A DNA stretch of 35,929 nt from Bugula neritina (lineage: Eukaryota > Animalia > Bryozoa), in the NCBI GenBank assembly GCA_964035545.1, contig CAXIUT010000308.1, forward strand, positions 1 to 35,929, given 5' to 3'. The notes below the pieces were generated by a model that was not told where the DNA came from, did no database searches, and saw only the letters and a list, made by a program, of their open reading frames with translations. The position numbers were made by a program, and so were the translations under genes. The stretch's first letter is position 1. The number at the start of each line of letters is the position of its first letter. This document shows, one piece after another, positions 1 to 35,929 of the stretch.

Positions 1-89
1 CCCAACCCCAACCCCAACCCCAACCCCAACCCCAACCCCAACCCCAACCCCAACCCCAACCCCAACCCCAACCCCAACCCCAACCCCAA
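1..89 (+). repeat. Left telomere, (CCCCAA)n
   Basis: Perfect C4A2 hexamer array at the 5' end; Tetrahymena-type ciliate telomeric repeat in the correct orientation for a left end. Confidence 0.97.
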
Positions 90-163
90 ATGAGTGTTCA
101 TAAATTCAATGATTTTAATTAGTGAGTTAATAGAATTATAAATTTATACTCATACATATCCAG

Positions 164-1086: not shown

Positions 1087-1143
1087 TCATCTAAAACCTA
1101 TTCTATTAATAATAAAAATATATTGTAACCGAATTTATAATTA

Positions 1144-4932: not shown

Positions 4933-5034
4933 TTAACAATCCTCTGCTATAATATCTAATATATTATCATAATATTCATATAAAAGTATTCAATCAGTTT
5001 CATACAAGCATTTTCATCTTTTATATTTATTTTA

Positions 5035-5122
5035 TGGGGTTGGGGTTGGGGTTGGGGTTGGGGTTGGGGTTGGGGTTGGGGTTGGGGTTGGGGTTGGGGT
5101 TGGGGTTGGGGTTGGGGTTGGG
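5035..5122 (+). repeat. Internal (TTGGGG)n tract, right telomere of the first 5.1-kb unit
   Basis: About 14 perfect TTGGGG units about 100 bp downstream of the TGA at 4932. Confidence 0.95.
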
Positions 5123-7162: not shown

Positions 7163-8296
7163 TCAAGTTTGACTCTAAAATATTTTTTTTATCGCCTTTA
7201 AATGTTCCATCTCCTTATATAGTTCTTCTTGATCGGATTCTAATCTATTATTCACTCCTCTAATTAGTCTCTGCTGTTAGATAATTACTCCAACTTTACC
7301 TCGTAAATACCCTCTGTCTCCTTCTATTTTTCTTCCCTTTTTACTGACAATTTCTCGTTTTTATTGAGTTTCTTTGATTTTCATGTTGATCTTTTCGTTT
7401 GTTTAGTTATAGAGCTTTAATTTAGAATTTAGAATGCCAATAGTTAGTCGATGATGTTTTACAAGGATTTAATTGTTTGTAAAATTACCTTTTAATGCAT
7501 AAAAGTGTTTCAATATTTAGCTATTTTTTTACTTCAAAAGATCTAACTTTCCAAATAACTTTTAAATATTCCTTTTTTCCCTTGTTATCCATCCTTCTCC
7601 AATGTTTTCTACATTTTATTTTTATAGTTCTTATTCTTCTTCTTCATATTATTTTTCTTCATCAAGAGATAGAGATAATTAAAGTTGAGTATTTTTTCCT
7701 TTTAATTTTTGAATATTCGATTCTATTTTTCTCATTTGATCTCTAATAGTTCTTCTTTCGAAATTGTACATTTACTTTTTTTTAACTGATTCTTCAAGAT
7801 TAATCAATTCTTGATTGATTTTATCTTCATTTAATTATAACTCACGAGATATTTTGATTTATAATTCAGCTAAAGATTGCTTTATCAACTTCTATTATTC
7901 TATTTGACGGCTACATTTTTCAATGGCATTTAATTATTAATATTATTTTTCTTTTCTTTTCTAGTAAGTTGTATTTTTATCTTTCCAGTCTGTCATAACT
8001 TTTTTCAATTTTTTTTGAAGTTAATAAATCTTTATTTTTTTATTAGTGTTTCTTCTTTGAGGTGCCTGCTTCACAATCTTACTCTTTGAATTTGAACTTG
8101 ACTATTTATAAGTTAAATTAATCTATTGAGAACGAGAATGATGCATCGAATGATTTATATCTTGTATCTCCTTTTATAGTTCTTGATAGTGATTAATTTT
8201 GTCCTGATAATCTAAGATCTATTCATGTAGCTAGAGTTTAACAGCCTCTTCTTGTTTTAGCTATATTTATGGTTCTGGGTTGGGTTAAGAAGACAT
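7163..8296 (-). CDS. Coiled-coil protein, 377 aa
   Basis: ATG 8296 to TGA 7163, 1134 nt, E/K-rich under TAR=Glu. Confidence 0.7.
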
Positions 8297-8364
8297 TTTA
8301 CTTCTTTGAACTAGTTTAATATATTGAATAAATATATCAAACTTAAGAATATATTCCATATAGA

Positions 8365-10584
8365 ATGGTTGATATATCGAAACATAGTCTTCTAAAAAAA
8401 CATAACTAGATACATAAAGATCTAATTAAAAAGTATCAATAACATTTTAACCCCCTTTTTCTACCTAAAATGGCAGTTACAGGCTACCATATAGAACTAG
8501 ATCCCTCTTGCCAGATCTTTTTCAGCAAATTAAAACTATCAGACAAGAACCTTATTCAAAGATAAAACTAGTTCATTGATATCATGAAAAATATTGTCAC
8601 TAAACAATCTTAAAATTGTGCTACTGATTTGCTACTACTGTCTTTAGCAAATATCCCAGAACAATCAAGAAAAATGACAGTACAATTCTAAGAAAATAAA
8701 CATAAATATTATTAAATTTTAAGTAGCAGATTAAAAGATCTCAACTAGTTGATATTTCATATATAAAGATTTCAAAAGTAACCATTGCTATAAAAATAAT
8801 GCAGAACAATTCTTCAGAAATAAATAGTAAAACTTAAAAGTGGATATAAACAACATCAAAATAAAAAGATGATAGAATAAATAAAAACAATGTAAAAATT
8901 AATTTAATAAAAATAAAGCTAAACCCAATATTTCAACTTAAAGGCTTTTAAATCAAAATAAAGAAAATAAAAAGAATAGCATATAAGAAATATGCTAGCA
9001 AAAAATAAAAATATACTAAATATGAATAGAATAACAACTTAAGCGTCTTCAAATAAATTTTAAAATACTGATTCAGTAGATATTAGATTCAGTTAGCAAA
9101 AAGATAAAAATTTTATATTAAAACAAAAACCTCTGATTCAACCTCCTTTTAAAAATAGTATCACATATAAAGATAGACTTCTTAACAAATTTGATTCAAT
9201 CAAATATGATTATCAAGCTCCAGAAGGATCTAAAAAAGTTATCACTAGGTTTAAATAGAATACTTTCAATAGTAAAAAACGTCAATTTTTTAATAAAGGA
9301 AACTATTGGAATAAATATAATAAATAAAAAAGTTAAAATATCGATAAAAGCATTAATTAAAATGACAAAACTAGTTAAATAAGATAAACTAAAAGATTAT
9401 TTAAAGTTAAAAGTAAAAGCAATGAAAGAAGATCATTGATGGCAGCCCCTATCTTTTAGTCAAAACAGAAAAATAAGAAAAAAATAAGATTGAAGACATA
9501 GATGATATCAAAATCAAAATACAATCAATAAAAGAGATAAAAGAGATAAAAGAGATAAAAGAGTAATAGTATTTGTAAGATTAGTTGCAGTTCGAAAAAT
9601 GATTCAAAAAAAATGTCTATATCAATCGATAACTAATAAAATATTAGACCCAAAAGCACTTCAATTGAAAAGAAATAATCATAAATATAAATACAATCTC
9701 TTGGTTTTCTTGTTTAAAATACTTAGCTCTAGGAACAGAAACAATACATGAAGAGTAAAGGTCAAAGAGGAAAGAAATTCAAAATAAATAATAGTCAAAG
9801 AAGAAACAGCATGGTGAATTCATAGTAATCATTAGTTAAAAGTTAATTAATGATTAGATATAATATTAAACCTGAGAAGCACAAATTTTTATCTAGATAA
9901 AAAGAATAGATTTAGAGAGAATAAAAAAAATCAGTAACCTCTGTTTTAAAATCAACAAAAAAAGGTCAAAGATGTGGAAAAATGGTTCCAAATAGTAATC
10001 GCGCTAAATTTCAAAGAATATTAAAATAAAAAAATTTATAATAAATACTTATTGATAAGGATATTTAAGAAGATGATAAATATCGAAATAAATAATCAAT
10101 TAAAAGAAGACCAGCTCATTTCTTAACAAATGATCTCAGAGTAAAAAATAACAAACATATTCTTTCTCATAAATCAAGAATTCTACTTGAAGTTGATCTT
10201 GATGCAGATTTTTAATAAAAATAACCAATCAAAAATAAAAATCAATAATATGTTGATAACAAAGGTTTCTCAGTACAATTTTCAGAACTAGCTAAATTTC
10301 GATAAAAAGCTAATCAATAAAATCCTTTTTATTAATATTCAATGGCTCACTTTTATGGAGGTCAAAATATTAAATAATTTTAGTATTAAATAATTTCCAA
10401 TGAGAAAGGTATGTATTCCTTTAATAGACAGTTCGTTCAAACTCCTAAAAGTTAACAATCTCAACAAAAAATGATTAGCTTTACAAATAAAAAGGATATG
10501 GCTCTTGATTTTGGAAAACAATTGGCAAGATAGTTTCAAGATTTAGGTCAAAAAAATATTATTACTCCTTCAAGAACTAATTGA
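8365..10584 (+). CDS. Uncharacterised K/E/N-rich protein, 739 aa
   Basis: ATG 8365 to TGA 10582-10584 in one frame; includes a short TAAAAGAGA (EKR) repeat near 9530-9563. Confidence 0.7.
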
Positions 10585-10907: not shown

Positions 10908-12533
10908 ATGAACATTATTATCCTTATCTTCTTTCTAATTCAATCATAGATAGCATTGAAATAGAAGAATTTTGAAGAAAATTGAACTACTAAGAGATTG
11001 AAAACTCCTTAGTTAAAGATAATTTAAATTAAGGCTTCAGGATAGTTACCTTCAGGTCTCACAATAACTTAATAATAGTATTAAAATATAAACATTGACA
11101 ATAATGATTAATATGACTGAAATGATATATATTCTAACAATTTATAACAAAAAAATGAGTCAACTAATAGATCTAGAACAAACCATTGTTCCCAACCTCT
11201 CAGAATTCTCTGCTACCATCATGTCTTTCTATCTACTGACACTTGCTTACCACAGTTCTTATAATAACATTCTCTATCTTCTTTACAGTTCAAACTATCA
11301 ACCATATAACCTCACCGACCCGTATCAAAATTACTTTATCCTTCTATGGGATTCAAACTCATCAACATCTATCAACAACTATACAAGTATCAACTTTACA
11401 TGTAGCCTACAATGTCGCATCAAGGCAACTTCTTCTATGTTTTTGATAGAAAGCGAAGATGAAATTAAACTTTTTTCAATGTTTTAAGATCAAATGAATA
11501 TTGATTTCAGTTCTCCATTGCAGGCATATTCTAAATCATCTCTGCCCAACTCACCTCCCTTTAAATATTATTCTTCAGATATCTTCAAAACAATGTTTAT
11601 CTACACTGAAGGAACTAATCTATACTTTTTATATCATTCTTCATATAATTCCACGCCTTCTTCTATTTTTTTCATATTGCCTAGTTTTTATTCTTCAGTC
11701 TACAGTATAATCATTACTGAAGCATATGCTATCATTGCATTTCAAATAACAAATGGTATAGAAAGCTATCTAATTCCCTGTGTCAGCTGTGTATTTAATT
11801 ATCAGTATGTTTCAGGATCAGTTATGGACTCCTCAATGTATCGAACTTTTACCGCTAATCGTAATATTACTTCTCGATTTTGGGTAACAAGAGCTGATCC
11901 TGCTTTCTAGACTAATAATATCACCACTATATGGTATATAATTGACTCAAGAGCAGTGAAGTTGTCATTAGATTTGAATTCGAATACTTAATCGTTCATT
12001 AATTTTACACTTATTGGGTAGACAGGAAGCTATGATAGCAACTATAATGATCTTATTTTTTATGGAAAAAACAATACTTTTGTGGAAATATAGAACTACT
12101 CTCTTGCTGATTCATCACTCATACTCTATCTTCCCTCAAATAATTCAATAGAAAGGACAGCAATTTCAAATGATTCTCAAAGAATAGCAATCCATGATGA
12201 TTCTGATAGTTACTCAGTAAAATTATACTCATTAGTTTAAAACTGTTAAAGTTATGAAACTTCCCAAAATACTGGAGATGTTTGCTAATGTTCATAATTT
12301 ATAAATGGAAATTGCAAACAAAAAATATAAATAGTCTAAACATAACAATCTTCTTCTTTTCCTATTTACATAATTATAGTTCCAATCATAGCAATTCGTA
12401 TTTTTGAGAATATTTAGCTTTAATAATAATTGGAACATGGCTTATTTATAAACTATGCCAAAATTATCGAAAAAAGAGTAGAAGAACAGCTTGGAAATAT
12501 AATTCCTCATAATTTATTTCACTTTAAATTTGA
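10908..12533 (+). CDS. Type I membrane/surface protein, S/N/Y-rich ectodomain; 5' end uncertain; intron 12398-12417
   Basis: Long frame open from about 11002. The 20-nt intron restores a TM helix (PIYIIIVPIIAIPLIIIGTWLIY) and basic tail ending at TGA 12531-12533. A signal-peptide-like start at 10908 lies in another frame and hits TGA at 10983. Confidence 0.6.
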
Positions 12534-12575
12534 ATATATTATATTGAATTATCTATAAAATAAAGATAAATGCCA

Positions 12576-13850
12576 TCACTTCTTTGAAAACTTCAAATAA
12601 AATTCTCTGTCATCTACATTTTAAAACTTAGCCAAAAAGTTAACCTTATTTACCTCATAAAATCCTTAGTTTAATGCAGGTTCTTCTTTGTACTTAAAGA
12701 AAGTATGAATTGGAATTGAACCAGCTTTTCCTGACATATGCTTCCTCTTATCATTTGCCACCCTTTGATAATCGTTATGGAAACATACCTCTTTGGTAGT
12801 TAACATCTCAAAACAACGGATTTTCAACCCATACTGCTTACCAAGGTTTATAAAGTATTGTCTGTCATCTTTTTTAGGATTAGTATTATCAATCACAACG
12901 CTTTTTCCGTTTTTTATCTCTTCTTCAGCCACCTTATAACACTTTTCTTTAGTTTTAAGAGTATCTCGATTAACTCGGACATAGTTAGGTAAATAATTCT
13001 TACAAAAAGAAGATTTTCCTGAACCTGGAGCACCAACCATTATGACCATTTATTTTTAGACAAAGTTTACCTTATTGCCTTTACCTACAATAAGTTATCC
13101 CTCCTCAGGAACAGATGCAGGATTGAATCCTTTCACTTCTAGTTTATCTTTTTCTCCCTTAAAGATATTATCAGGTGTCTTAAAGAGAAGTCCAGCGTTA
13201 AGAGCAAATTTATAATCAGAATCTGAAAAATCTTTATGTTGACCATACTTTCGACCAGCAGCATCTCCACAATAGAAACTCTTATTCATATCTACCTTTA
13301 TTTTACTATTGAATCTTTATCTAAACAGATTCCACATGCCAAGTCCAGGCTTACGATAAGAATCTTCAGAAGTAGCGAAAAACACTTGCATTTAAATTCC
13401 CATTCCACTGGCCAAGTTTTCTACTTTAGTCTTGATATCATTAGCATTGGTCTTTCCTTTCTAAACTCCATTCTGATTACTGAAAATGACCACTTTGAAA
13501 CCGTCAGTGTAAAGTTTTTTGATTGTTGAGCTCACATTGTCAAAAAGGAATCTCCAGTCATCAGCATTCTTAGCAAATTTAGCCCCACTTTTAGGAGTTA
13601 CTATGGTATCATCCATGTCAAAAGCAGCAAGAAGAGCTGAATCCTTGAGGTTGGGAGAAGATCCTACAATGCAAGTTTAATGTTGGGTCCAGTTCCACTG
13701 TCCCATCATCTTATTTCCTTTCATTTAATTATTTGATAATGTGATACTTTGATTGAATTTGTATTAATTTCTGATTAAATCTAATCTATCTCCCTCCAAA
13801 GGTCTCTTTCTACAGAATCTTGCAAATCTCCAACTAAAACCAACAAACAT
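12576..13850 (-). CDS. PNKP: Bifunctional polynucleotide 3'-phosphatase/5'-kinase (no FHA domain), up to 424 aa
   Basis: HAD motifs AAFDMDDT, FSNQ, RKPGLGMW, GDAAGR..DFSDSD; P-loop GAPGSGKS; VNRDTL; VIDNTNP; P..N[TAA=E]GF. In-frame ATGs at 13850 and 13724. Confidence 0.93.
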
Positions 13851-13905
13851 CCTAGCCACAGATTAATTATAAGTTAGTATTATAATTAGACTAATTTTAG
13901 CAAAA

Positions 13906-15003
13906 ATGGAATCCACCTAACCACATTCATCACCTTAAATCGAACACTTACTAAAATTTAAATTTAAAATACGAGAAGCACTTCAATAACAACAATACAA
14001 ACTACCAATACAAACTTTTTAAAAAGCCTTTGACTTCAATAAACTATCATATGTTAATCGATCTAAACAATTTCTCAATATTAGTATGAAATCAGTCTAT
14101 CTACTTACTCGGATCTTATAAATCATTGAAATAGTAATATAGCTCATTTAAAAACAACAAATCATCACCAAAAGGAACTTATACTATAAACTAGTGAAGT
14201 ACTATGCTACTAAGTACTATTTAGTTGACTTGGATATCGATTTGATCTGTTTTAACCTGAATATACAAAGATAATAGCTAAAAATTTTCAGTTCCAGTAG
14301 ATGTCTACTCTTTGGAAACCTTACTATCAATCTTAATCATCATGAACTATATTGTAAACCTAATATAGTAACCAATATTCCTCTAATTGAGCATTTAGGA
14401 CCAATTTAAACATAAAGTAAAACCTTGATTATTCTTGAAAAATAAAGTGCTCTCTATCAGCTACATCAATAACTTTTTAGATAAGTTATTCAAGGGATAT
14501 AGGATATTTAGTCTATCATATAAAATACTATTTTCATCTCATCTAAAGGATATCCTGACAGTACAACAAGAAACATTATTTAATCGCTTCTGCCTTTGAT
14601 AGATTCGATATATTACCTTGGAGATAGTGATATTTACGGTTTAGATATCATTTTATGTTATTCAATTGCCTATCATAATTGGAGTACTTTCATTAGCAAA
14701 GTTAAATGGATTCAATTAGAAAAATTAGTTGATCCCTTGAAGGTTACACCATAATTATTGACTCAAACAAAATAAGATAAATTAAAGTGCATAGAAGTGT
14801 TAGAAAGACCTTATTTCAAAGAAATAGAGATGTTTGTTCCTAACAATGATGAAGGTAAATAATTTCAAAATAAACTGATAGCTTGGAAAAGAAGAGTTAA
14901 AGCAATGCAAGCAAGTAATTCAAAATTATAACTCTAAGCTTTATTCAGATATTTACCTCAAGGCTGGCTTCAGTAAATTTTAACTGATTAGTATTGTATT
15001 TGA
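13906..15003 (+). CDS. SPO11: Meiotic topoisomerase VI-A-like transesterase Spo11, 365 aa
   Basis: TKRNLYY (catalytic Tyr region), IILEK[E]SALYQL, SKGYPDSTTR, GDSDIYG (DxD), KL[E]L[E]AL; TGA at 15001-15003. Confidence 0.9.
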
Positions 15004-15039
15004 ATAAATTCAGTTATCTTATAATATCTAAAATATCTT

Positions 15040-15527
15040 ATGCAAGGCTCCAACAACGATATCAAAACTATTATTTATGAAAGATTCAAACCTATCTTCC
15101 AGGCCTATGATAAAGACCTCAACTCCACTCTTGAACCTTTAGAACTTAAAGCTCTTCTTGCAGATAACCTTGGAGTCCCTGAAGGAGATATTTCTGAAGA
15201 ACAGTTGAACTGGCACTTTGGAAGAATTGATGAAAATGGAGACGGAAAAATTACCTTTTAAGAATATGTAAATGATTTTTTAGGTAGTTTTCTCATTTCT
15301 TTGGAGATCGAGCTAAGGTAGCAAAAAAGCAAAAAAAGTAAGGCGAAGAAGATGAGTTAATTGATATTACTTAATTCAGAAGACTTATGGAAGATACTTT
15401 TAAACCATTGAAAATAACTATTACCTAAGAAATGGTGCAATGGAACTTTGATAAGATCGATACTGATCACAGTGGACGTATTTCCTTTGAAGAATATATG
15501 AAATTTGTTCAGAAATACAACAGTTGA
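15040..15527 (+). CDS. EF-hand calcium-binding protein, 155 aa; intron 15268-15287
   Basis: EF loops DKDLNSTLEPLE, DENGDGKITF[E]E, degenerate EEDELIDIT[E]F, and DTDHSGRISFEE; the 20-nt intron is required for frame. Confidence 0.88.
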
Positions 15528-15643
15528 TACATCAATCAAATATTCTTTTAATTTTTTTTAAATAACTCTTTTCTTTTTCAAAATAGCAAAAATTCAAGTT
15601 ATTTTCAAAAGCTCATAAATATTGACATCAATGAAAATGAAAA

Positions 15644-15913
15644 TCAGCCAAATGAAATACTTGATTTTCCTCCTGGAGGATTCACTATTTTAACACCTTT
15701 ACCTTTCTTAGCCTCTCCTGAATGTTCCACCACTTTGAAGCTTGAATCATTTTTCTATGGATTCTTAGTCTCTTGAACAGGCATAGGTTCAGGAATATCG
15801 TAATTTTTTTTGACAGGTTCTTGCTAATGTCCCCAACCAATAGAAAAGTTATTTTTTCCTCCAGGTTATTGAGTGATCTTGACTCCACTATATGTTTTTT
15901 TGCTGTCAGTCAT
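15644..15913 (-). CDS. Small SPIRAL1/Jupiter-like putative microtubule-associated protein, 89 aa
   Basis: Two PGG motifs: VKITQEPGGKNNFSIGW and C-terminal VKIVNPPGGKSSISFG-stop. Confidence 0.75.
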
Positions 15914-16065
15914 TTTTAAAATTATTACTATCTACTAATAACAAATTACCGTTTTAGAATAGATTTACTACTGATTCTTCAAAAATAAATCAGATTTATG
16001 TTAATCATAGTAAATAAATTCAAATTGATTAATTCTCTATCTGATACAAATAAAAACAAATAAAA

Positions 16066-18363
16066 ATGACAACTCCATCATACTCTATTCCTTAACATCA
16101 TTTCTTAGAAGATTACTATAGTAACAAATAGTGGACCCCTTCACAATCATCTGAAAAAAACTCTCCTCCTTTCACCACTCGCTAATATGTCAATCATGGA
16201 GATATCAAAAAGTAAGAAATCAAAAATGATTATGGATAAATCATCTCAATATAAAATGGTTTTAAAAAACTAAAAACAAATCAAGTCGAAATGCTTAAAG
16301 AACTTAAAAAGTAATATGAAATTTTGAAAAATTCATAAATAAGATCTGGCATGTATCCAACAGATAGTCAACTACCTACAGATAGCAATCAAAGTAACTA
16401 ATAATCATCGAAAAGCATGTCAGAAGCATTATCTTCTGTCAGTAGCAAAGTCGAACAAAAAAATAGGAAATCTAGAAAAGAAGGGCAAATAGTGGCTCTT
16501 GAACGTAAAAAAATGGAAGTTTTACTCAATAATAGTATGAAAAAGATAGAATAGTTGCTCAGCAGCTAGATATAACTCAAAAAAACTGTCCTTTAGCTTA
16601 GAAATAAACTATAAAGCAATAAAGTTTTGGAATAAGATCTTTAAAACATGAATAAAGAACATAAAAGATAGATTTAAATATTGAGAAACTCTTTTGAGGA
16701 AGCTAAAAGATAATGCTAACTCACAAAATAAAAAATGAAAGAGTATAATAGTTCTCTAATTTCTGCAGAGGGAGAACTTGCTTTTGCAAAATTACAACTT
16801 AAGAAAAAAGATGAACATACAAAAGCTCTAGAATAAGATATTTATCTTGAAAAAAATAAATTATGTACTTCTGAGTTATAACTGAAGAAAGCTAGATTGG
16901 ATCTATAATTACAAGAGAGAAATTTTAAGGAATAAATTTTAATATTGAACAAAAGACTTACTTCCTCATAAGAATAATTCTTTTCTTAAAAAAATTAATA
17001 AAGAGAAAAGTTACTAAATTAATTATCTCTTAAAGAAGAACGATATAAATTATTACTTAATTATTCTTAAAAAGATCAGCAAGAACTTCTATAACAACAG
17101 CAGATATAAGATAAAGATACTATTCATAAGCTACAGAATGAAGTTAAGAATATAGAATCAGAGCTAGTACATTATAAATAAAAATAAAAGTTATTGATGT
17201 AAGAAATTGAAGTCTTAAAAACTGACAAAAAGTCTATTTCTTATTCATAAGTAGTTATATCATCAATACTTTCCAAATTAACATAAATATCTTCAAATTA
17301 TGATCAGAAATTAGCTTTAGAAGTAAATACATTAAAAAAACAACTTTAAAATCTTAAAATTCGAAACCAAAAAGATAATAAAGAGAGTGATTTGATATAA
17401 AAAATAAATAAAATGAATATTTATGAACAAAGTTTGAAAGCTAGAATACAATAACTTTAAATAACAAGTTAAGAATAAAACATTTAAAAACTTTATTTCA
17501 TTCGAGATATTAAAACAATTAAAGCTCAAGTATCTGAAGAAAGAAGAAATAAAGAATAAGCTCTTAGTTAAGTTAAAGATCTCAAAAAAACTTTAAGAAA
17601 AATTGAAGAATAAAATCAAAAATTACATATTTAACTTGATTCAAGAAATAGTCTAAAAGTAAATTCAAGTGAGACATAAAGCAGAAATAAGTATACACCA
17701 AAAGAATATTATCGAAAATAGTCAGAAATAGTAGAAATAAGATAAGATTTTGGACAAATGATCGATCATTATAAATAATAAATGCAAGAATATGAGGAAT
17801 AACTCAAACAAATAAAAAGACAACTAGCAGAGTAGTAGATAAAATCATATAAATACAAGTAAGAATCAGAGTTAAAATATTCATTATCTCGTACTCAATA
17901 TTAAGCATAGATCAATAGATTAAAAGATCAAATTAATAAACTAAAAAAAAATTATGCTTTAGAAAAAAATGATCAGATAAAATAAAAAGTAACACTTTAA
18001 TAAAAAATAATAGAACAAAATAAATAAATCGATTAAATTTTATCTCAATTGAAACTAATTCAAAAATAAAAAGATTCTTAACTTTAAAATTATAGAAAAG
18101 ATAACTAGAAAAAAATTAAAGGAATTCAAGAAGAAAATATCGAAAAAATAGGAAAATTAGGTCAACAAGTCTAGTCGTTAGCCAGCTTAGGTAATCAACA
18201 TGCACAAGTAGTGCATAGAAATGCTTGGCTATAACAGTAGTTAATTGAAACAAAACGATTAAATCGCCTAAATAATCAAGTTAATTAAGGAATTACACAT
18301 CTTTGGTCAATAAAAGAAGCTTAATACTCGAATATAAACTAAGTTTTAAAGTCTATTGAATGA
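16066..18363 (+). CDS. Long coiled-coil protein, 765 aa
   Basis: ATG 16066 to TGA 18361-18363 in one frame; heptad-like E/K/Q/L composition. Confidence 0.75.
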
Positions 18364-20266: not shown

Positions 20267-21916
20267 ATGTAAAAGAAGCTAAATAAAGAGTAAAGACTCT
20301 TAAATGCAAAAGAGTATTTTAAATCTCTTGTTAAAGAAGCAAAACCTCGACCTTTTGAACTCAATATTTCTCTAACATCTAACCCGTTCATCAAAAACAA
20401 GGATAGCTTTAGATATATAACAAGTCATCTCAAAGAATACAATATTCGTATTAAAAATGGAGAAGTTAAAGATATATATTAAATAATTTCTTTTCAAAAA
20501 ACACATTCAATGTTATCAGACATAGCTCAAATTGAAACTACTTAAAATCAAATTGCTTCCTTATAATCTCTTTTTTCATGGTTCAAGTAACAAGAGAAAC
20601 TAGTTCAACAAAGATAAGATCAAGGTAATATTCGATATAAAATGAGCAAATAATATCGAGATGCTCTCAAGTATTAACCTTAAAAAGAAGAAGAATAAAT
20701 TGAAGAAGAACTTGATATTCCTTTTTATCTAATAGAAAGACTAATTGAACCTTTCAGAGTACATTAAAGGACACTACATTCTTAATATGATTAACCTTCT
20801 CGAAGATTAAATGACTACAAAGTGAAAACTTTAAATATACTTAGCCTTGCTTCTTTAGATAATCAAAAATAATAGGCAAAACCAGCTAAAGTTCTTTATC
20901 CAGTACCTCCTAAATATTAATATCCAAAAGAAGAGCTTCCAGAAAACATAAATTAATAACCACAAGTTGTTCCAGTTGAAGGTTAAAAAGCTGAAATTTT
21001 ACCTGGAACCTAAGGAGCTCCTATACCCTAATAGCCATAACAACCAGGAATGGATCTTGGAATTGGCTAATAGCCATAATAACCTTAGTAATAGGAACCA
21101 TAGTAGCTACCAGATAAATTACGTCCAAAAAATCCTCTATATACAGCAGCAATATCAACGATAGATAACACAGATACAGACAAAGAAGGATATTTATTTT
21201 ATAGAAGCAACAATACAAAAGAATAAAAGCATATGAACAATCATTACATCAGAAAATATCAAGATCTTGTTAAAAAGCAAAGAGAAGATATTAGTCATCT
21301 TGAAATAGCGCATGATTGGGCTAAAAGAAAATCAAGAATAGTTAAAGATATGCAAAGAAAACTATAATAAATGAAATTCAAACCAGAATATAGCTATTGT
21401 AAAGAAAATCCTGTTCCTTAATAAAGATTAACTCAGCAATAATAGATAAAATTTGGATTTTCATCAGCAAATAAACCAAGAGGAAGAACTCTTGAAGTCA
21501 ATCTCACCTTACCAGAAATTAAAAATCATGATGGGCTGACAGAAAAATCAATAAGAAGAGATAGAATATCATCACTAAGAAACAAATTTGCTAAAGTTCT
21601 TAATATAGCAGATTATTAAGAAAGAGATAGTGTTCCTTCTCTTTGTCAATATTCATCAAGAAGACGAGGATTTTCATAAATAATTCGGAATCACAGTCAC
21701 TCAAAAGAAAGACTTAATCAGCTAGAATAAGTCAACAGAATTAAATAAAAATTAACTAAAGTCAAAGTCAATGTAAACATAAAGTCATTATCAAGAGGAT
21801 TATGTCTCCCATAAAATGAGGATTACTTTTCTGAGACACCTAGAGAATTTCCATAAAAGCAATTACCAAGTAATCCTGACTTGATTGATGCTAAGAAGAA
21901 AAAGAAGAAGAAATGA
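20267..21916 (+). CDS. Uncharacterised protein, 549 aa, with acidic Pro/Glu-rich middle and basic tail
   Basis: Single frame to TGA 21914-21916; the EEPEEPEEEEPEE tract is encoded largely by TAA/TAG. Confidence 0.72.
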
Positions 21917-21951
21917 TGATATTAATATCATATAATAATCGTTAAATTTAA

Positions 21952-23259
21952 ATGTTAATATAAAAGCCTCAAGAATTTCCTACTACAGGTCCCAACTCTC
22001 GCTATCCTTCTGATCCGCCTAAATCTGACCAATCATATCCTCCTAACCTGGTTCTAGCAGACTGTATTATTAAATAAAACAATACTCTTAAACATCAGAT
22101 TGACTATGTAAACAGTGAACTTAAAAAGGTAAGTTCTTTATCAAGAGGACTTCTCAAAGAAAACATAAGTTTAAGATAGTTGTATAAAGAAAGAACCCAG
22201 GATATTGTTAAGTTGATAAAATCTATTTCTATTCAAACAGATGAATAAAAAGTAGATTATGAACATCAGTGTCATTTGATAGAATAACTCAATTATGCCA
22301 CTTTAAAACAAATCAAGATATTGGATCAAGAACGTAAAAAATCAAAATAAAATCTATAAGAACAACAATCCAAAGTTGATGCTCTTGTTTAAAAAAAGAA
22401 TTAACTTGAATATGATTAACTTAATAAACTAAAAGCCAGACTTAACAATGGAATCAGTCCTTCATCTATTGCCAAATTCCAACAAAAATATTAAAAATAA
22501 GTATAACAAACATCAAAACTATAACATGAAATAAACCAACTTATTAAATTAGATACATAACTAAGAACATAAATACAACATCTCAGAAAAACAGAGTTAC
22601 CCAATCAATACTCCATCTCTTAATAAAAAATATAATATACTCATAAATTGACAGATATTCAAGAACTAAATAAAAAATTAAAAGAAGAATTACAAGTAGA
22701 TAAACAAGATTTTTAAAAGACAGAATCCAATAGAAATATAATAGAACAAAGACATAATCAATTGTCTCAAGGAATAGCAGATTAAATGAGAAAATATTAA
22801 AATTGTAGAAAATATCAAAATTAAATAAATACACAAATATAAAAAATAAAAAGTAAAATAAATGGATCTAATAATAGACAAATCAAACAACAAAATTAAC
22901 TATAATAACTTAATAATTTAAAATAATAACTTATAGATAAAATAAAAAAATATAAAACAAAAAAAATAACAGATTAAAATGATTTCAGAAGAAGATAAGA
23001 ACAATTAAGAATAGATAATCATTAAAAAATATAAAAAATATGCAAAGATATCAGTAAAAGCAACTCTAGCTTTTAAGATTAAAAAAATAAGTTGATAAAA
23101 TAACAAAATAAAGTCAATGATTTAGTAAATAACCTATAACATGAACATAGTTCATTGTTAGATCGAGTTTAAGAGTACAACAAAGTCATTCAAGAACATC
23201 CCAATCCTATTCAGTAAATATAAAGAATTCAGTTAACTCTTAGACTCAAAAAAAGATGA
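21952..23259 (+). CDS. Coiled-coil protein, 435 aa
   Basis: ATG 21952 to TGA 23257-23259, 1308 nt. Confidence 0.72.
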
Positions 23260-25015: not shown

Positions 25016-26277
25016 TCATAGAAATTCACTTAGCTCTGAATTTTTGGGAAGTCTGTAAACAGAACAGTTGATTTGCTTTTCAAACATCTTGAGTCTAGGT
25101 AGTTCAGATTACTGTTCTAAATCTATAAAATTGATAGCAATTCCTTTAGTTTCAAACCTTCCAGCTCGTCCTATCCTATGCAAATAATCTTCTTTTTCCA
25201 CAGGCAAGTCAAAGTTAATAATAAGATTCACTTTCTCAATATCCATTCCTCTTCCAAAAAGATTAGTAGCAACCAAAACTTTCGATCCATTGTCTCTAAA
25301 CCTCGCATAATTTTAAAGTCTTTCCACTTGAGTAAGATCAGAATGAATGCAAATAGGATTGAATAGAATGCTTCTTAGGAGTTGACTGAGCTGAATAGTT
25401 CTGTCAATAGTACTAACAAAAATGATAGCCTGGTTAAAAGGAATATTATCCAGAATATAAGATAAAAACTAGAATTTGTTTCTTTCAGGAACCAATTCGT
25501 AAAATTGACTAATAGCACTCAAATCGATATTTCCATCATTAGTCTGAATAAAGTCATATTCATGCACAAAAGATTTATAGGCACTCTGCATATCATCATC
25601 AATAGTAGCACTCACCAATATATGTTGAACATTTCGAGGTAGACCCCTTTGAAGCTCAAATATTTACAAATACTCAAGCATCGCATCACACTCATCAATT
25701 ACAAAGAATTTTAGCTATATTATTAATCAATTACATTTGAAAAGTTAATACATTTACGATAGTAAAGATCCAGCAAGCGTCCAGGAGTACCCACTATGAT
25801 ATGCGGAGCTTTGTTTTTATTTTGAAGTTAGTCCATATCTTTGTCAATTGGAAGTCCACCAACATAGCATCCGCAGCGAATCTGAGGCCAGTTGAAATAT
25901 CCACTGAATTTCTAAAACTATTTGTATATCTGAAAAGCCAGTTAGCGAGTATGAGCGACTACCATGCACTGATGAGGTAAATATTCTTTGTTGGACTATG
26001 GCGCCATCATGTTCAAAATGCCTATCATAAAAATAGCTGTTTTTCCTGATCCAGACTTAGCCTGACACATTATGTTCCTTCCCAGCGATATTTTAGGAAT
26101 AACTTTTGATTGTATTTCACTTGGAAAAGAAAAGCCAAAATCATTGACAGCAGATAGTAGTTCATTCTTAAGAAAAAGATCTTTCCATGAAGCGTTAGTA
26201 GTCGAAGAAGGAAGAGAGTTAGCTGGTATGTTTTTAGACTTAGAACTTGAAGCTTTTCGAGTATGAGAACCTTTCAT
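25016..26277 (-). CDS. UAP56: DECD-box RNA helicase, UAP56/DDX39/Sub2-like, 413 aa; intron 25715-25734
   Basis: Q motif PSEIQ, AKSGSGKT, HTR[TAA]LAFQI, GTPGR, DECD, SAT, VATNLFGRGMDIEKVN, YLHRIGRAGRF. Confidence 0.88.
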
Positions 26278-26359: not shown

Positions 26360-27378
26360 TCATTGACAATCTTCTTCTTCAATAACTTTTAAGAACCGAT
26401 CGCTGAACCAATTAAATTCATCAATCAATTTTCTGTATTTCCCTTTTAAATACTCTAATTCTTTTATTTTATCTTCTTTTTGATTATTTATCATACTCAT
26501 ACTCATCTTTTTATTTGATGAACTTGATTTCATCTTCTTGTCTCTATTTAAAATAAAAGTCTTCCTTTTTTACCTTCCCTACTCTTTCTCCATAAATCTA
26601 CTTCGAGAGGAATCGCTTTACATCTTGATAAGTTATTCGGATTTTATTATTTATTTTTTTGAAGGTTGATGCTTTACAGGCACATATTGCTCTACTTTAG
26701 TATTTTTACCAGATTTTTATAGAGAAAAATATTTACGATTAACTTTCTTTTCTATCGATCTTTTTAAGATTTTACTTTTTTGACTATTATCTTTCGTTTA
26801 CATTTTCGAGGATCTTTAAGACTTAAGAATTGAAGGACTGTCTTCAACGAAAATCAATATTTTATTAAAACCATAATTAATTAAAGCTCTTTTTTTTTGA
26901 ATTATTTTCTTACTGATTTATTACAATAACATTCTGCAACCGACTGCAATACTGCACTATATCTCCTCCAAACTCTTTCTCTTCAATTCTAGTTGCTTAT
27001 TTTAATCACAATTTTAATCTTATAACTAGAAATGAAGTTCTCCACTTTCCCTATTCTCTTATTTCTACTTTTTTTGTCTCAAATATTGACTCTTTTTAAA
27101 CTGAAGACTTAAAGCATTGGGTTTATATTGTATCATTTTAAACAATGCTTTCATTTTCATCTTATTGTACCTGTTTTCAAGATTGCTAGTAACTTTGCAT
27201 AGAGTGAAAGCTAGCTAATAATAAGTTGAGTGAAGTTGTGATAGTAATAGTATAGTTTAAAGATGAACGTGTTGTTCTTCTAGTTCCTCATTTCTAAATA
27301 AAGGAAAAAATACTAATAGGAAGCTTCTTAAACCTTATTAGTTGATAATTGTGTTTTCTTTCTATTTTTCATACTCAT
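26360..27378 (-). CDS. Uncharacterised basic protein, 332 aa; intron 27294-27313
   Basis: ATG 27378, 20-nt intron, open to TGA 26360; spliced 999 nt. Confidence 0.65.
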
Positions 27379-27450
27379 AATAATTATAGTCGTCCCATTA
27401 ATTACTAAATTTTGAACATAATCGAATAATTTCTATAGATATATTTTCTA

Positions 27451-28077
27451 ATGAAAAAAACATCAAAGAAATTAACTCTTAGCTCTCCATACAATAAAAT
27501 AAACTAACTACTTTGGCAAGTTAAACGATAAAATACAACTAAATAGAAATAAAACATACAACTTAAAACAAAAATAAAACAAATGATTCAACACCCACCA
27601 AAAGAAGAACCATCGTTAACACTTAAAATAGAATAACATTATAAAAAACTATTACAAAAAACTAAAACACAAGCTCTATGGCTCAAATAAACACACTCAA
27701 TGATTTAGTAAAGAAATTGCTAAGAACTTAGAAAAAATATCACTAAAATGGAAAATAAAATACATAAAACAACCAAAAAAGCATTAAAACTCGAATAAAA
27801 AATAAAGAAAATATATCTTAAATAACACTAATAACCATCAAATATCAATTAAAACAATTAAGAATAGTCTAACACACTAAACTAATTATAAAATGATAAA
27901 TAAAAATTGTAAAAACTTCTAACCCATAAAAAAGATCAAGCAAGTAAACTAGAATAAGGCAATAAAATATTCAACAGAGAACTAAGACAACTTCTTAGCG
28001 CCAAGCATGCTCTTCAAAAATAATTAAAAAATAACAGAAATTCAACTCCATCAGAAGTAATCGTCTCAATAGAGTGA
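27451..28077 (+). CDS. Coiled-coil protein, 208 aa
   Basis: ATG 27451 to TGA 28075-28077. Confidence 0.65.
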
Positions 28078-28114
28078 TTCATATTCAAAAATTATAAATA
28101 TAAACATTGTAAAA

Positions 28115-28549
28115 TCATCTTCTTCTGATAACATTGAATGTATCAAAAGATAACTAATTACAATTTTGTCTATACTTACGCCAAACACTTTTACGACCTC
28201 TGTTTTCTCCATAACTATAACAATCCATCACAATCTAGTCTAAATCACCTTCAAAAGGTTATTTACTAACATATCGTCGAGGAGAATACTATCGAGAAAG
28301 CTACAAAAATTTTTATCTTTTAAATTGACTCTGCTCTTATTCATTAGGGACATACATCTGCTTTTTCCTATCACCCGCTCCTATCTTCTTCAAAACATTG
28401 CTTATACGAACTGTTGGCAGCCTCTACCAAATTGCTGTTACTCCACCTCCTTTTTCTTTTTTGTCCTCACTCTTATCAAAAGACTCTCCTTTACTTGAAT
28501 AACTTTTCGATATTGCTGGCATTGAATAAGAACTTTTTCGTTTACTCAT
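28115..28549 (-). CDS. Small uncharacterised protein, 144 aa
   Basis: ATG 28549 to TGA 28115, 435 nt, filling the gap between neighbours. Confidence 0.55.
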
Positions 28550-28594
28550 GCTCTAAATAAATTTATAAAATCATAATTGCGAAAATATTATTTC

Positions 28595-30956: not shown

Positions 30957-31037
30957 GTTGGGGTTGGGGTGGGTTGGGGTTGGGGTTGGGGTTGGGGTTG
31001 GGGTTGGGTGGGGTTGGGGTTGGGGGGTTGGGGTTGG
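30957..31037 (+). repeat. Internal, imperfect (TTGGGG)n tract
   Basis: About 13 units including variants (TGGG, TTGGG, TGGGG, TTGGGGGG), about 160 bp beyond the ATG at 30794. Confidence 0.93.
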
Positions 31038-31772
31038 TGTTACGCACAAGAACAAAAAAGCTATAGTTACTATCGTCTCAGCATTGATTCTCATCGTTCA
31101 TCAGATCACTAAAACATTTCTGCTCAGAAATAACATCCTATCAGTTACCAATAAATAAAGACCAATCATAGAGATGATAAAAAGTAATAAAATATCAAAG
31201 AATTAAAAATAATTGATAACTATGACATCCCTCAAGTACTTGAAAATTGCCAAGCAATTGATAACTATAACCATTGTTTAAAAAAGCAAAGACTCAGAAA
31301 AAATAGTAATTAAGTAACACTCACAAATCAAATGAAATAAAACTCAAATATTCATAATCTAAGAAGACTTTTGCCAACAAAAATGATTTAATAGCCTTCT
31401 TTCACACCCAGAAAACACAAGAATCTAAAATAAAACTTTAACAATCAAATCAATCAAAAAATGGCTATTCTGAATCATAAAATAGCTAAAATAGAAGTCA
31501 TGACTCCCCAAAAGCCATCAACTCCTAGAAAAAACAATTATAGAGAAGAATAATTAGAGTACCCTATCTAGTTTTAAAAAGAAGAATCAATAACATAAAG
31601 AGGATATAGTCAAGTAACTGCTACTTCTGAAAAATAAAATTAACTCTTAAGTAGAATAAATTTAGGAAGACTCATTGAATAAGAATAAAATTAAAATTAA
31701 GTTTAGATTATCCAAGATCTCAGCTATAAACTTAGCACAAAACTAAGGTCAATTATCAGAAATTTTAGTTGA
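31038..31772 (+). CDS. 5'-truncated uncharacterised protein
   Basis: The frame is open directly from the telomere junction (YAQEQKSYSYYRLSIDSH...) to TGA 31770-31772, with no ATG for about 98 codons. Confidence 0.6.
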
Positions 31773-31814
31773 TGATCTTTTATATTTTATGTTTATTAAT
31801 AATTATTAAGTCAA

Positions 31815-32861
31815 TCATTCAATAATGGAACATGCCTCTTTGATTAGCTCCTTTAGACGATCTGGATTTAAATAAGTTCCAGTTTATGCTTTATTTCTCC
31901 ATTTCTTCAAACAACTTTGAGAATGACCCATATTTTTCAACCATTTCCAGAGCTATTTCAATGAACTAGGTTTATTTCCGACTATCTTCAAATGCATTGA
32001 ACGAATACTTTCAAGCAAATCTTCCACTTTTTTATTTTATCTATCCACTCCTGACTTAACATATTCACTTTAAAATTGGTTCAGTTTTTAGCAATTCATT
32101 GTATTTCTGTTTTAAGATTTATCTTATCGACTTCCTCTAAGACTTTCAATACGTTTAATTTCCTAAATATTTCCATTTGTTCTATTCATTAGTTTCCCAA
32201 CTGATCTTTTTGGTTGAACACGAGTCATAGACATTTCTTTCAGACTATCTTCTCTTCTATTTTAGATGAATTTTCTTTCTTAGTCTCTTCTTAACTGGTC
32301 ATATTTTCTCCTTTCCTGTTCTAAATTTCCCTTAGTAGCTGATAACTATTGCTCAAGCATTCTATTTTTCATCAATATTGTCTGAATTTATCCATTCATT
32401 TCATCAGTTACGTTCTCAAAATATCGCCTATCGGCCTATCTCGCTTGTTCTGATTTCATCAATTCTGCTTCTTGACATCTCATCTAAATTTTTAATGATT
32501 ATGCTGTTTCAGATAACTGATATAATTGTGCTTTAAGATTAGCGTTCTCTTCTCTTAACTAACTATTTACTTATTATTCTTCTCTTGCACCTCTTTAATC
32601 ATAAGGAGAAAATTAATCCTGAGTTAAGACTCGCTGAGGATTAAATGTACTGCATGAAGGAGAATATTGATGAAGACCTATCGACTTTTTATTTGAAGAT
32701 TGAAAAGGAGAAGATCTATGACTTGAATATTGATGTTTTTGCTTCAAATTTTGATATTTTTTCTTTAAATTCGGACTTTCTTGTCTGTTGAGATCAAGAA
32801 GATAACGATATTTGCCTTCTATAGGCTTTTTTTCTCTCTCAATGTCGAAATTTTCAATCAT
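31815..32861 (-). CDS. Coiled-coil protein, 348 aa
   Basis: ATG 32861 to TGA 31815; extends track ORF 32613-32861. Confidence 0.72.
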
Positions 32862-32905
32862 AATATTGATATTATAGCCGTTGAATAAATAATATTACGA
32901 TCAGT

Positions 32906-33919
32906 TCATTGTTATTTTCTATGTTCTTTTATATTTTCATAACCTTTAGCTTCTGAAGAATACTCAAGTTCCATTTTGGTTTATATAATTTCCATTTTGG
33001 TTTAGATAATTTCCATTTTATTTTACTCCTTGATATCATTTTTCTTCTCCAATTTTTACTTTTGTCTATTCGTAAGTGTTCTTGTTGAAAGGGTTTGACT
33101 CTCAGGAAGAACTGGCTAAATCACTTCTTTAGGACAGAACACAGTAAAATTACTCCAGTTAAAGTACCATCTATGATTAGCAGCACATTTATAATGAGCT
33201 TCTTTCTTACAAGACTATGAATGACATGCAAAAGATGCTCCCTTTTTATTACAATAAATACATTTCATGCTTTTTGTTTCCTCAATTCCCTTTTAAACAT
33301 TGCTCAACTTGGATGTTTAAGGTTGCAAAAATATATGACTTACCCAGAGCAAACACAATAAATGAGCATAAACTTTATCTTTGAAAGGACCATAAAATAA
33401 CCCAGATTCTCTTTTTCCCTGTTTTTCTTTACTTGTTAAACGACAAAAATGACATCTAACTACCTCTTAACCTCTGAATGGCTAATCTACAGGCGAATTC
33501 ATTTTAATAGCTTATTTAATTTTGTTGTCTTAAGCTGATTCTATTGATCCGTCACTGTCAAAGGCAACAGGAATTTATTCTTGTCTTTTACCTTTTTCTC
33601 TTAACTATCCTATTTTTATTACTTTTAAATCTATAGTAAATACATCCCTTTCTAACATATCTGCAACCAAAATAGCCCAATTCTTAGGACTAAAAACAGG
33701 AATTTCGACTTTATTAGCTCCATTGTAAAAATTATTAATCACTAGTCGAATACATTTCCTACTAGAAGCAACATAATTAAAACTTTGAACAATCTTTTTG
33801 CATACATAATCATAGTCAAATAATAGATCTGTTTCAGTTTATTAATCTAGAGGAAATTCTTCTTGTTCAAGTCCTTCTATTTTTATTTTTAGAGTTATTT
33901 TCTATTCTAATTTTTTCAT
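32906..33919 (-). CDS. Extended PHD finger (zf-HC5HC2H, PHF6/PHF7/PHF11-type) protein, 337 aa
   Basis: CHFC..AHLLCLLW..CIYCNKKGASFACHSESCKKEAHYKCA..FCPKE. Confidence 0.82.
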
Positions 33920-33963
33920 AGCGCCTAAATAATATCAATTGAAACAATTAGTAATATAAAATA

Positions 33964-35307
33964 TCAACAAGGAGGAGGATAGACGTATAAGTAATTCATC
34001 ATCTCCATGTATTGCTCATAAATGAAAGGATAGTTGGGTAACATATTCTAAGGGCAAGAATATGCATAAGGATTCATTTGAAGAGGAGATTCTAAAGGAA
34101 TTTTTTAGAACACTTGTTAAGGTTCATGTTGTTGAAGAATGAGTTCTTTTTCTATTGGTTCTTATTTTTTTAGAGATTCAGTGCACAAAGGACTTTCTAT
34201 TTTTTAATTGTTTTCATTGTTATATGTGAAAATCTGATAAGAATGGTGCTATTCAGAAACTTCTTTTTTGAATAAATGTTCTGTTTTAACTTAAGGCTCT
34301 TCCTAATTCATTCTTTATTCAGCAAGAGGTAATTCATGAGCACATTATTTTTCCATCTTTTTGAGTCTTCTTCTTTCAATGTTAGCCATTTGTTTTTTGA
34401 GAAGTTTGATGATTTTCTGAACCATCAGGTCTTCTCTTTATTTTTTGTTGTATTTTTGTTTGGTCATCAAAGAGTTAAACCTATTTTTTATCATATGCTA
34501 GGTCCTAGTATCGTTAAGAATAGGCACCAATTTACACCATCTTTTTCCAAATTATCCAACAAATTTAAAGATAGCTAGGTCTTCTTGATGAGTCCAAGCT
34601 CCCCTTTTTTTCTTATCATCAAGATGGTTGAGCCATCTTTCTCTGCAGTGTTTTGGAGATTTGAATAGAATGCAGTTAGTTTTTCTGAAGATGTAGTTGG
34701 AAACCTAGTTCCATTGGTTGATTTCAAAGGCCTTAATCGCTTCTAATAAGAGAGCATCTTCTTCCTAACTCCATAATATTTTAGATGATGATTTTTGTAA
34801 ATTGAGGTATTGGAAAAGTAAAAATTAAGGGTTTTTGTTGAAGAAAATAGGAGCATGATGAGTCCAAAACTAAAGATTCTAAATAAATAAAGGAAGTACC
34901 ATCTCCTAATTATTTATTTTTGCAAAATAATCTTTGAAAAGAGAGAACCAAATAAAAACTTTTTTCTCATTATCATACCAGTTCTAAAAGTCTTGAGAAA
35001 GCTCTTGGGTTGAATAATACCTAGGTAACAATAGAATGTACTTCTGATTAATGGTTTTGTACATGTTTCTAATAGTGTTACAATCCAAAGTTTCAATTTT
35101 AAAGGACGACACTATAAAAGCTTTAACTTGGCACGAGACTATGCTCTAGAAGTTTCCCTTCTCTTCTACAATGTCCACAAAGTCCAAAAATAGGTTTTTA
35201 CCTTCGCTCATGTAAAAAATATATGTTGAGTTTCTGTTTTCCTTTTGAATTCCACAGCTCTAATTTTCATCCGAGATTACAGTACAAAGGAAAAAATCTT
35301 TATTCAT
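33964..35307 (-). CDS. Two-repeat Myb DNA-binding protein, 447 aa
   Basis: WS[E]EEDALL..W..KSPKHCRERWLNHL..KGAWTHQED..GKRW..RT[E]HMIKNRF. Confidence 0.88.
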
Positions 35308-35839
35308 CAAATATCAAAGATATCGAGAAAACAAGCAGATGGTTAGTTTAATATTTAGGAATCTAACTCAAAAATAAAGGTCTTTTTTTTCTATTAATTT
35401 TAGTTTTTGCATTGATTTTACTTTCGTTCACTGAGAAGAATAATACAATACTACCTGAATTTAAATAAAATAATTTAAAAACTACTAAAACTACCTATTC
35501 TTGTTGATATCTATCATAACATAGTTATTTTTCTTTATAAATACCAAGAATATTCTTTTTGGATAATAAGAGAGTATAATTCGAAAAAAATCCTTTTTCC
35601 TTCTTTAAACATCAGAGCAAAAAAATAGAAGACTAAAGTTATTAACTTTCTTGAAAGAATTCGAGTCATAACTGTTTTTTTTATAAATAATACGTTATTT
35701 AAAAAGTTTATTTTAAATAGCATTATGATAAGTATTATAGTCATATACTAAACTTGATAAAGCAAAGAATTGATTAAATATCATATATTAAATGTAATTT
35801 TAGAACTTAATATTCATTCTAAACATTAATATTTGATTA

Positions 35840-35929
35840 TTGGGATTGGGGTTGGGGTTGGGGTTGGGGTTGGGGTTGGGGTTGGGGTTGGGGTTGGGGT
35901 TGGGGTTGGGGGTTGGGGTTGGGGTTGGG
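35840..35929 (+). repeat. Right telomere, (TTGGGG)n
   Basis: G4T2 array running to the end of the window, preceded by one TTGGGA variant. Confidence 0.96.

Follow-up and report, generated by a model that had tools for sequence, protein, structure and literature searches.

The window, that is, the whole stretch of 35,929 bases that was analysed, is made up of three ciliate macronuclear contigs joined end to end. Its G+C content lies between 24 and 32%, and that of the genome is given as 27%. The segments and their telomeric repeats are as follows.

1-5122: segment 1, with a C4A2 left end and a G4T2 right end, a complete linear minichromosome of 5.1 kb
1..89: left-hand telomere of segment 1, C4A2
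5036-5122: G4T2 tract at the right end of segment 1, pairing with the C4A2 repeats at 1..89
5123-31037: segment 2, closed on its right side by G4T2
30958..31037: imperfect G4T2 telomere at the junction of segments 2 and 3, on the 3' end of the former
31038-35929: segment 3, closed on its right side by G4T2
35841..35929: 3'-terminal telomere of segment 3, G4T2

It is these short chromosomes, capped by telomeres of C4A2/G4T2 repeats, that assign the window to a ciliate macronucleus. Telomere repeats of the C4A2 type are those of Tetrahymena and Paramecium, and we take those of the window to fit an oligohymenophorean. Multi-gene minichromosomes of about 5 kb are present. Scans of the window for tRNA genes and against Rfam, rRNA included, gave no matches; the window holds no eRF1 gene, and no homologues were found for segment 1 (1-5122).

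Genes with in-frame TAA and TAG codons

Seven genes, all on segments 2 and 3, are described here individually. Each is interrupted in its reading frame by TAA or TAG (TAR) codons and closes with TGA. The motifs quoted in the earlier note, which had read both codons as Glu, were each located in frame.

12576..13724, minus strand: gene for PNKP (polynucleotide kinase 3'-phosphatase), one exon; stop TGA at 12576-12578
12666-12668, minus strand: TAA of the PNKP site N[TAA]GF
13906..15003, plus strand: gene tentatively called Spo11/Top6A-like, with many TAA and five TAG in frame; stop TGA at 15001-15003
14443-14445, plus strand: TAA of ILEK[TAA]S in the same gene
14923-14943, plus strand: KL[TAA]L[TAA]AL in the same gene, with TAA at 14929-14931 and 14935-14937
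15040..15527, plus strand: EF-hand protein gene, 155 aa, four in-frame TAA
15040-15267, plus strand: EF-hand exon 1
15250-15267, plus strand: ITF[TAA]EY
15268-15287, plus strand: EF-hand intron, 20 nt
15288-15524, plus strand: EF-hand exon 2, followed by the stop TGA at 15525-15527
15360-15377, plus strand: IDIT[TAA]F
25016..26277, minus strand: SUB2/UAP56-like DEAD-box helicase gene, 413 aa
25735-26277, minus strand: helicase exon 1
25715-25734, minus strand: helicase intron, 20 nt, GT..AG
25019-25714, minus strand: helicase exon 2, followed by the stop TGA at 25016-25018
25927-25953, minus strand: HTR[TAA]LAFQI
25942-25944, 25918-25920 and 25912-25914, minus strand: TAA, TAG and TAG of the helicase motif Ia region
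31815..32900, minus strand: coiled-coil protein gene of unknown family, 15 TAA and 6 TAG; stop TGA at 31815-31817
32906..33934, minus strand: gene for a PHD-like zinc-finger (zf-HC5HC2H) protein, 13 TAA and 5 TAG; stop TGA at 32906-32908
33964..35313, minus strand: Myb-domain protein gene, given as a TGA-free frame whose start is not fixed; stop TGA at 33964-33966
34756-34773, minus strand: WS[TAG]EED, with TAG at 34765-34767
34705-34707, minus strand: TAG of WN[TAG]V
34477-34506, minus strand: RT[TAG]HMIKNRF, with TAG at 34498-34500

The helicase carries five TAA and four TAG codons in frame, three of them within the stretch 25912-25944, which reads on the minus strand TAA CTG GCT TTT CAG ATA TAC AAA TAG TTT TAG and is translated as [TAA]LAFQIYK[TAG]F[TAG], the region of DEAD-box motif Ia. 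The stop-free N-terminal piece of the protein matches Pfam DEAD, and its closest relatives of solved structure are DDX39B/UAP56/SUB2. A full HMMER search with a 93-residue piece from the N terminus as query returned 150 representatives; the best full-length homologues are named SUB2/UAP56 of Cryptococcus and plant helicases, and these named fungal and plant organisms use the standard code. When the helicase was read through with X at every TAR and aligned locally to the homologues, it showed ~40% identity to fungal and plant SUB2 and aligned as far as the last residues of the full-length SUB2 homologues.

The alignment columns at the TAR codons speak for Glu at the best conserved sites. At TAA112, in the motif Ia signature HTR-x-LAFQ, Glu is found in 83 of 87 homologues, and at TAG120 in 70 of 83; Gln occurs in these two columns, of which Glu makes up 95% and 84%, in no more than one sequence. 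The column of TAG122 has Glu in 30 of 75 homologues, Asp is seen at TAA198 in 15 of 26, and the other five sites fall in variable columns. Conserved Gln is encoded by CAA or CAG, as had been claimed: the Gln of PSEIQ is CAA (Gln in 148/148 homologues), that of LAFQI is CAG (Gln in 87/91) and that of FSNQ is CAG as well.

The closest match to the helicase, P0001, is a fragment of 94 residues ending where the window has TAG94. The 581-bp metagenome contig from which it comes (L001) stays in frame through TAG, TAA, TAG and TAA, and has TAA opposite TAG122 of the window. An exact look-up of the helicase fragment among public assemblies gave no record, and a scan of viral contigs with the helicase piece gave no relatives.

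Among the remaining genes, PNKP matches Pfam PNK3P and AAA_33, the EF-hand gene matches Pfam EF-hand families, the fragments of Myb orthologues (P0151-P0165) contain Pfam Myb domains and an orthologue of the PHD-like gene (L028) matches Pfam zf-HC5HC2H. For the gene at 13906..15003, the stop-free piece of one orthologue (L002) gives a weak match to Pfam TOP6A-Spo11_Toprim (E 0.0044, below the cut-off) and the window's own piece of 56 aa has no match in Pfam or PDB, so that the name Spo11/Top6A-like is only weakly supported. The spliced EF-hand product aligns without gaps to an orthologue that has no intron (L005), and three of its four TAA codons face Glu there. IDIT[TAA]F, which had been put forward as an EF-hand site, lies outside the calcium-binding loop, but the orthologues do have GAA or GAG at this position.

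Codon comparison with orthologues

The meaning of the two codons was assessed from 12 genes of the window and their orthologues on 25 metagenome contigs, 21 once near-duplicates had been removed. A scan of metagenome contigs with a 127-residue piece of the PNKP kinase gave 21 loci from relatives at 44-81% identity, several of which also hold, in unchanged gene order, the Spo11-like gene, the EF-hand gene and others. An apparent in-frame TGA in the PNKP of L021 and L022, which belong to a more distant lineage, is located in longer introns. A word search with a piece of the Myb protein gave a single match, and a second search with that match gave 15 fragments. Five of these (P0151, P0152, P0153, P0157 and P0159) were traced to seven further loci (L023-L029), which carry orthologues of the Myb, PHD-like and coiled-coil genes and of four further genes of the window. 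TGA-free frames were translated with X at TAR, orthologues in the true frame were aligned with BLASTP, near-identical loci were dropped and the codons opposite each codon of the window were tallied. Scoring was by a site-weighted BLOSUM62 likelihood in which every codon was treated as if its meaning were unknown. The comparison presumes that the standard codons of the environmental orthologue contigs are standard, and this is supported by the control, in which all of the 61 standard codons were assigned correctly, and by the named fungal and plant homologues of the helicase.

When TAA and TAG were scored separately, Glu was best for each, in agreement with the reading first proposed. TAA is assigned to Glu from 113 sites, 31.7 nats ahead of Gln, and TAG from 45 sites, 10.2 nats ahead of Asp. 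The margin for TAG is equal to that of the GAG control, which is assigned to Glu from 43 sites, 10.7 nats ahead of Asp. With the helicase added, Glu was recovered in all of 5000 site bootstraps for TAA (118 sites) and in 4922 of 5000 for TAG (49 sites), for which the margin rose to 12.1 nats. Gln, Lys and Tyr, and a meaning split between the two codons, were all rejected. The number of genes matters for TAG. The first six genes alone gave 10 TAG sites, all at variable positions and with Ser nominally leading, and because these left TAG undecided more genes were added; the assignment of TAG to Glu depends on the genes brought in afterwards, those of the helicase and of the Myb, PHD-like and coiled-coil proteins.

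The proportions of amino acids found opposite the two codons resemble those opposite the two standard Glu codons.

Opposite TAA: Glu.39, Asp.08, Gln.07, Lys.08
Opposite GAA: Glu.48, Asp.08, Gln.08, Lys.06
Opposite TAG: Glu.33, Asp.15, Gln.05, Lys.11
Opposite GAG: Glu.35, Asp.16, Gln.08, Lys.07

The exchange is also seen from the other side: GAA and GAG codons of the window face TAR in ~16% of pairs, CAR and AAR codons do so in 1-4% and TAT in 0%. Single sites show the same pattern. The partners of the PNKP TAA in N[TAA]GF are GAA (13), GAG (4) and TAA (2), and those of the TAA in K[TAA]MVIMVG are GAA (9), GAG (6), TAG (2) and TAA (1). The Spo11-like gene, with orthologues located in L002, L005 and L011, has the partners GAG/GAA, GAG/TAA and GAA/GAA at three TAA sites, the two of KL[TAA]L[TAA]AL and the one of ILEK[TAA]S. 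The three TAG codons of the Myb gene face GAG/TCA/ATT/GAA in WS[TAG]EED, GAG/GAT/GAA/GAG/GAA, that is, four Glu and one Asp, in WN[TAG]V, and GAG/GAA/GAG/TAG/GAG in RT[TAG]HMIKNRF. The TAG of the PHD-like site D[TAG]P has GAA in both partners, and the TAR codons of the coiled-coil gene are paired mostly with GAA, GAG, TAA and TAG.

In composition, GAR at 4.0% and TAR at 3.8% add up to a normal Glu content, which is not decisive by itself. Within the coding regions that were aligned, ~44% of the codons for Glu are TAR; that these codons are not rare is expected at 27% G+C, a composition that favours TAA. A tRNA scan of the 21 orthologous loci found nothing but one tRNA-Pro, in L019.

We also compared contigs from four public sequencing runs with the window over positions 11000-16999. 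Two of the runs, which carry the same organism label as the window, cover most of this sequence and the others small parts of it. There are 40 listed differences, ~1% and at the level of strains, and since most of them are synonymous third-position changes they confirm the reading frames used. Three involve TAR, two of them GAA>TAA (at 16453 and 16480) and one TAA>CAA (at 14149), and the three together fit TAR = Glu weakly.

The peritrich-type code and its rivals

From these comparisons, UAA and UAG are supported as sense codons for Glu, with the other 61 codons standard. In the genes of segments 2 and 3 this reading holds as the earlier note had claimed for the whole window; for segment 1, which lacks homologues, it would apply by extension. 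UAR as Glu, with no stop other than UGA, is the code of NCBI table 30, which has been reported for peritrich ciliates (PMC11687900, PMC10553269, PMC4967479). It was described by Sanchez-Silva et al. 2003, as cited in PMC4967479, and has been predicted for Carchesium polypinum and Campanella umbellaria (PMC4967479). All four features of table 30 are matched here, and the code itself shows no difference from it. We are therefore confident, as far as sequence comparison allows, that the window comes from a ciliate macronucleus that very probably uses this peritrich-type nuclear code. By analogy with stop reassignment in other ciliates, UAA and UAG would each have a tRNA of their own, Glu-charged and with the anticodon UUA or CUA, and eRF1 would no longer recognise UAR while keeping UGA.

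The earlier note had left open whether the organism is a peritrich or whether the reassignment arose independently. A peritrich is much the more likely, and is favoured because telomeres of the C4A2 type and introns of 20 nt are in keeping with a peritrich or another oligohymenophorean. These two features and the AT-rich genome fit Peritrichia, with which they are compatible rather than being diagnostic of it. UAR as Glu in a ciliate outside Peritrichia, through a second origin or in a deep lineage that has gone unsampled, we regard as improbable. In its favour, changes of code have occurred repeatedly among ciliates, also inside Oligohymenophorea (PMC10553269, PMC11687900), and the window is without rRNA and its relatives are metagenome contigs. 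Against it, UAR = Glu in ciliates is reported as a single event, in Peritrichia (PMC10553269), and is taken as of single origin there (PMC10553269, PMC11687900); a search of the literature from 2024 onward gave no other ciliate lineage with this reassignment. The genomes of three peritrichs have tiny introns in a narrow range of sizes (PMC13685798), and both verified introns here are of 20 nt. The known clade is also the simpler explanation.

The next question is whether the code is ambiguous or dependent on context, with TAR also acting as a stop or TGA read as Trp, as in Condylostoma, karyorelicts and the table 31 code of Blastocrithidia. Such codes exist (PMC4967479) and about a dozen genes have been examined here, but codon counts and gene ends make this a very unlikely reading. 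The 2203 homology-supported codons include 55 TAA, 20 TAG and 25 TGG and not one TGA, where chance would give ~36 (by arithmetic from the base composition of the window); were TGA read as Trp, it should at 27% G+C be commoner than TGG. That all 26 gene ends are TGA, as the earlier note counted, is partly circular, since with TAR as sense only TGA can close a reading frame. The independent observation is that nine gene ends at TGA match the TGA of orthologues or, for the helicase, the end of homology. The terminal TGA of PNKP aligned exactly with the terminal TGA in most full-length orthologues. Seven more genes, namely those ending at 31769 and 28118 and the Spo11-like, EF-hand, Myb, PHD-like and coiled-coil ones, stop within 0-5 residues of their orthologues: the Myb gene is level with the L026 orthologue, at TGA; the PHD-like gene ends at most 5 residues from the end of its L028 orthologue; and the coiled-coil orthologues in L024, L026 and L028 stop at the same aligned position. 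TAR codons do lie 5-30 residues before gene ends, and because conserved sequence continues after them they do not terminate. In the dozen or so genes seen, UGA is thus the sole terminator and has no use as a sense codon. The table 31 code of Blastocrithidia, a trypanosomatid, shares UAR = Glu with the window and differs in that UGA is Trp and UAR also stops; the homology-supported codons of the window, in contrast, include no in-frame TGA against 25 TGG, and the window carries ciliate minichromosomes with C4A2 telomeres.

Two readings would keep TAR as sense and give it another meaning, and to each we attach only a very slight probability. The first is the common ciliate code, table 6 (Tetrahymena, Paramecium, Oxytricha), in which UAR is sense and UGA the sole stop as here, but both UAA and UAG are Gln. 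The C4A2 telomeres point to Oligohymenophorea, whose ancestor has been inferred to have had UAR = Gln (PMC10553269); the one strain difference TAA>CAA and a few TAR sites at which Gln is the most frequent partner would also agree with it. Gln is nevertheless rejected for both codons, falling behind Glu with the helicase sites included by 32.6 nats for TAA and by 14.5 nats for TAG. Its share opposite TAA and TAG is not above that opposite GAA and GAG, it is nearly absent from the helicase columns of TAA112 and TAG120, and the invariant Gln positions are encoded by CAA or CAG.

The second divides the two codons as in Oligohymenophorea sp. PL0344 (PMC10553269), UAG being Glu and UAA Lys or another residue. 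PL0344 belongs to the same class, is AT-rich and has UAG = Glu and UGA as stop, like the window; a code of this kind exists in an oligohymenophorean, and TAG = Glu alone would fit it. It differs in that its UAA is Lys and in its introns, which have a median of 57 bp as against 20 nt for the two verified here. With the helicase sites included, Lys is behind Glu by 52.4 nats for TAA and by 19 nats for TAG, and it makes up.08 of the partners of TAA, compared with.55 for AAA. In the conserved columns of the PNKP family, TAA stands in Glu columns 34 times and in a Lys column once; TAG stands in Glu columns 11 times and in Lys columns three times, and these three single TAG codons of relatives are what might speak for a split. 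TAA and TAG also replace each other at identical sites between species, which argues against different meanings.

The least credible reading, to which we give almost no weight, is that the in-frame TAR are true stops in pseudogenes, assembly errors or RNA-edited sites: it has in its favour only that TAA and TAG are stops in the standard code, whereas TAR-bearing frames are kept across many species, the mostly synonymous strain differences indicate purifying selection, TAR interchanges specifically with GAA and GAG, and the two other samples with the same organism label have the sequence too.

Consequences for annotation and for the history of the code

The code is one already known in kind: the reading is correct and is needed for annotation, and it is not new. 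Its scientific value is small, the code having been known since 2003, and its practical value is large. Under the standard code or the common ciliate code, every gene of this genome would be fragmented or have ~44% of its Glu positions mistranslated. Protein databases already contain truncated fragments of relatives, P0001 and P0151-P0165, all of which end at TAR. We advise table 30 for annotating the assembly and the many related environmental contigs. What the comparison adds is a separate and clean assignment of UAA and of UAG, with a control of 61/61 codons, and the separate scoring matters because PL0344 showed that the two codons can diverge. Should the organism after all lie outside Peritrichia, UAR = Glu would have arisen a second time in ciliates or would mark a deep lineage not yet sampled.

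The PNKP locus and TAG codons in lysine columns

The relatives whose metagenome contigs bear orthologues of the window's genes (L002–L029) share the in-frame use of TAA and TAG (TAR) and occur widely in public data, both metagenomes and sequencing runs (JGI, ENA, Logan). Their G+C content is 35–48%, compared with 27% in the window, and their recorded proteins are only fragments, cut at the TAR codons. In two of these contigs, L002 and L005, the gene order found at 12576–15527 of the window is conserved:

12576–13724 (−), PNKP gene
13906–15003 (+), Spo11-like gene
15040–15527 (+), EF-hand gene

The first two genes are divergent, with fewer than 200 bases separating their probable starts, and the EF-hand gene begins 36 bases past the Spo11-like stop. 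Three columns of the PNKP alignment that are otherwise Lys (AAA or AAG) each contain a single TAG codon (L005, column 561; L016, column 485; L019, column 271). These are most simply explained as Lys-to-Glu replacements, AAG being one base away, but may instead represent a lineage-specific difference.

Introns and the helicase

Both verifiable introns in the window (25715–25734 and 15268–15287) are exactly 20 nt long and of the form GT..AG. The second, in the EF-hand gene, is absent from the L005 orthologue, where the alignment is seamless over the junction. The PNKP gene in L021 and L022 (about 3150–4520) is split by longer introns that contain TGA; at 44–63% identity, these two contigs are a more distant lineage, outside the window's 20-nt-intron clade.

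25016–26277 (−), SUB2/UAP56-like DEAD-box helicase gene

Compared with fungal and plant SUB2/UAP56, the helicase shows only about 40% identity, a low value for a protein that is usually very highly conserved, and it is probably a divergent paralogue rather than the main UAP56 orthologue.

TAA-rich frames and the minichromosome

Three long TGA-free frames have TAA as 8–9% of their codons and, with TAA read as Glu, give Glu/Lys-rich, coiled-coil-like proteins:

16045–18360, with GAA>TAA in two strain differences
21889–23256
7858–10581

The stretch 1–5122 is telomeric at both ends and is thus a complete linear minichromosome of 5.1 kb, within which lies:

around 4276–4680, internal direct repeat

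Several TGA-free frames are present in 1–5122, some of them coiled-coil-like; a search for homologues of this stretch found none.

Telomeres and chromosome breakage

The telomere tract ending the second segment (30958–31037) is irregular, containing GGGGTGGGTT, GGGTGGGG, GGGGGG and GGTGTT, an irregularity that looks like an artefact of reads or assembly within a repeat. G4T2 repeats also terminate L027, a contig of a relative. The regions 26363–28570 and 31818–35313 of the window lie on two separate telomere-ended contigs, and their orthologues are found together on a single contig in a relative (L026, 1–10028). Because L026 joins genes that are split in the window, the macronuclear chromosomes of related species seem to be broken at differing places.
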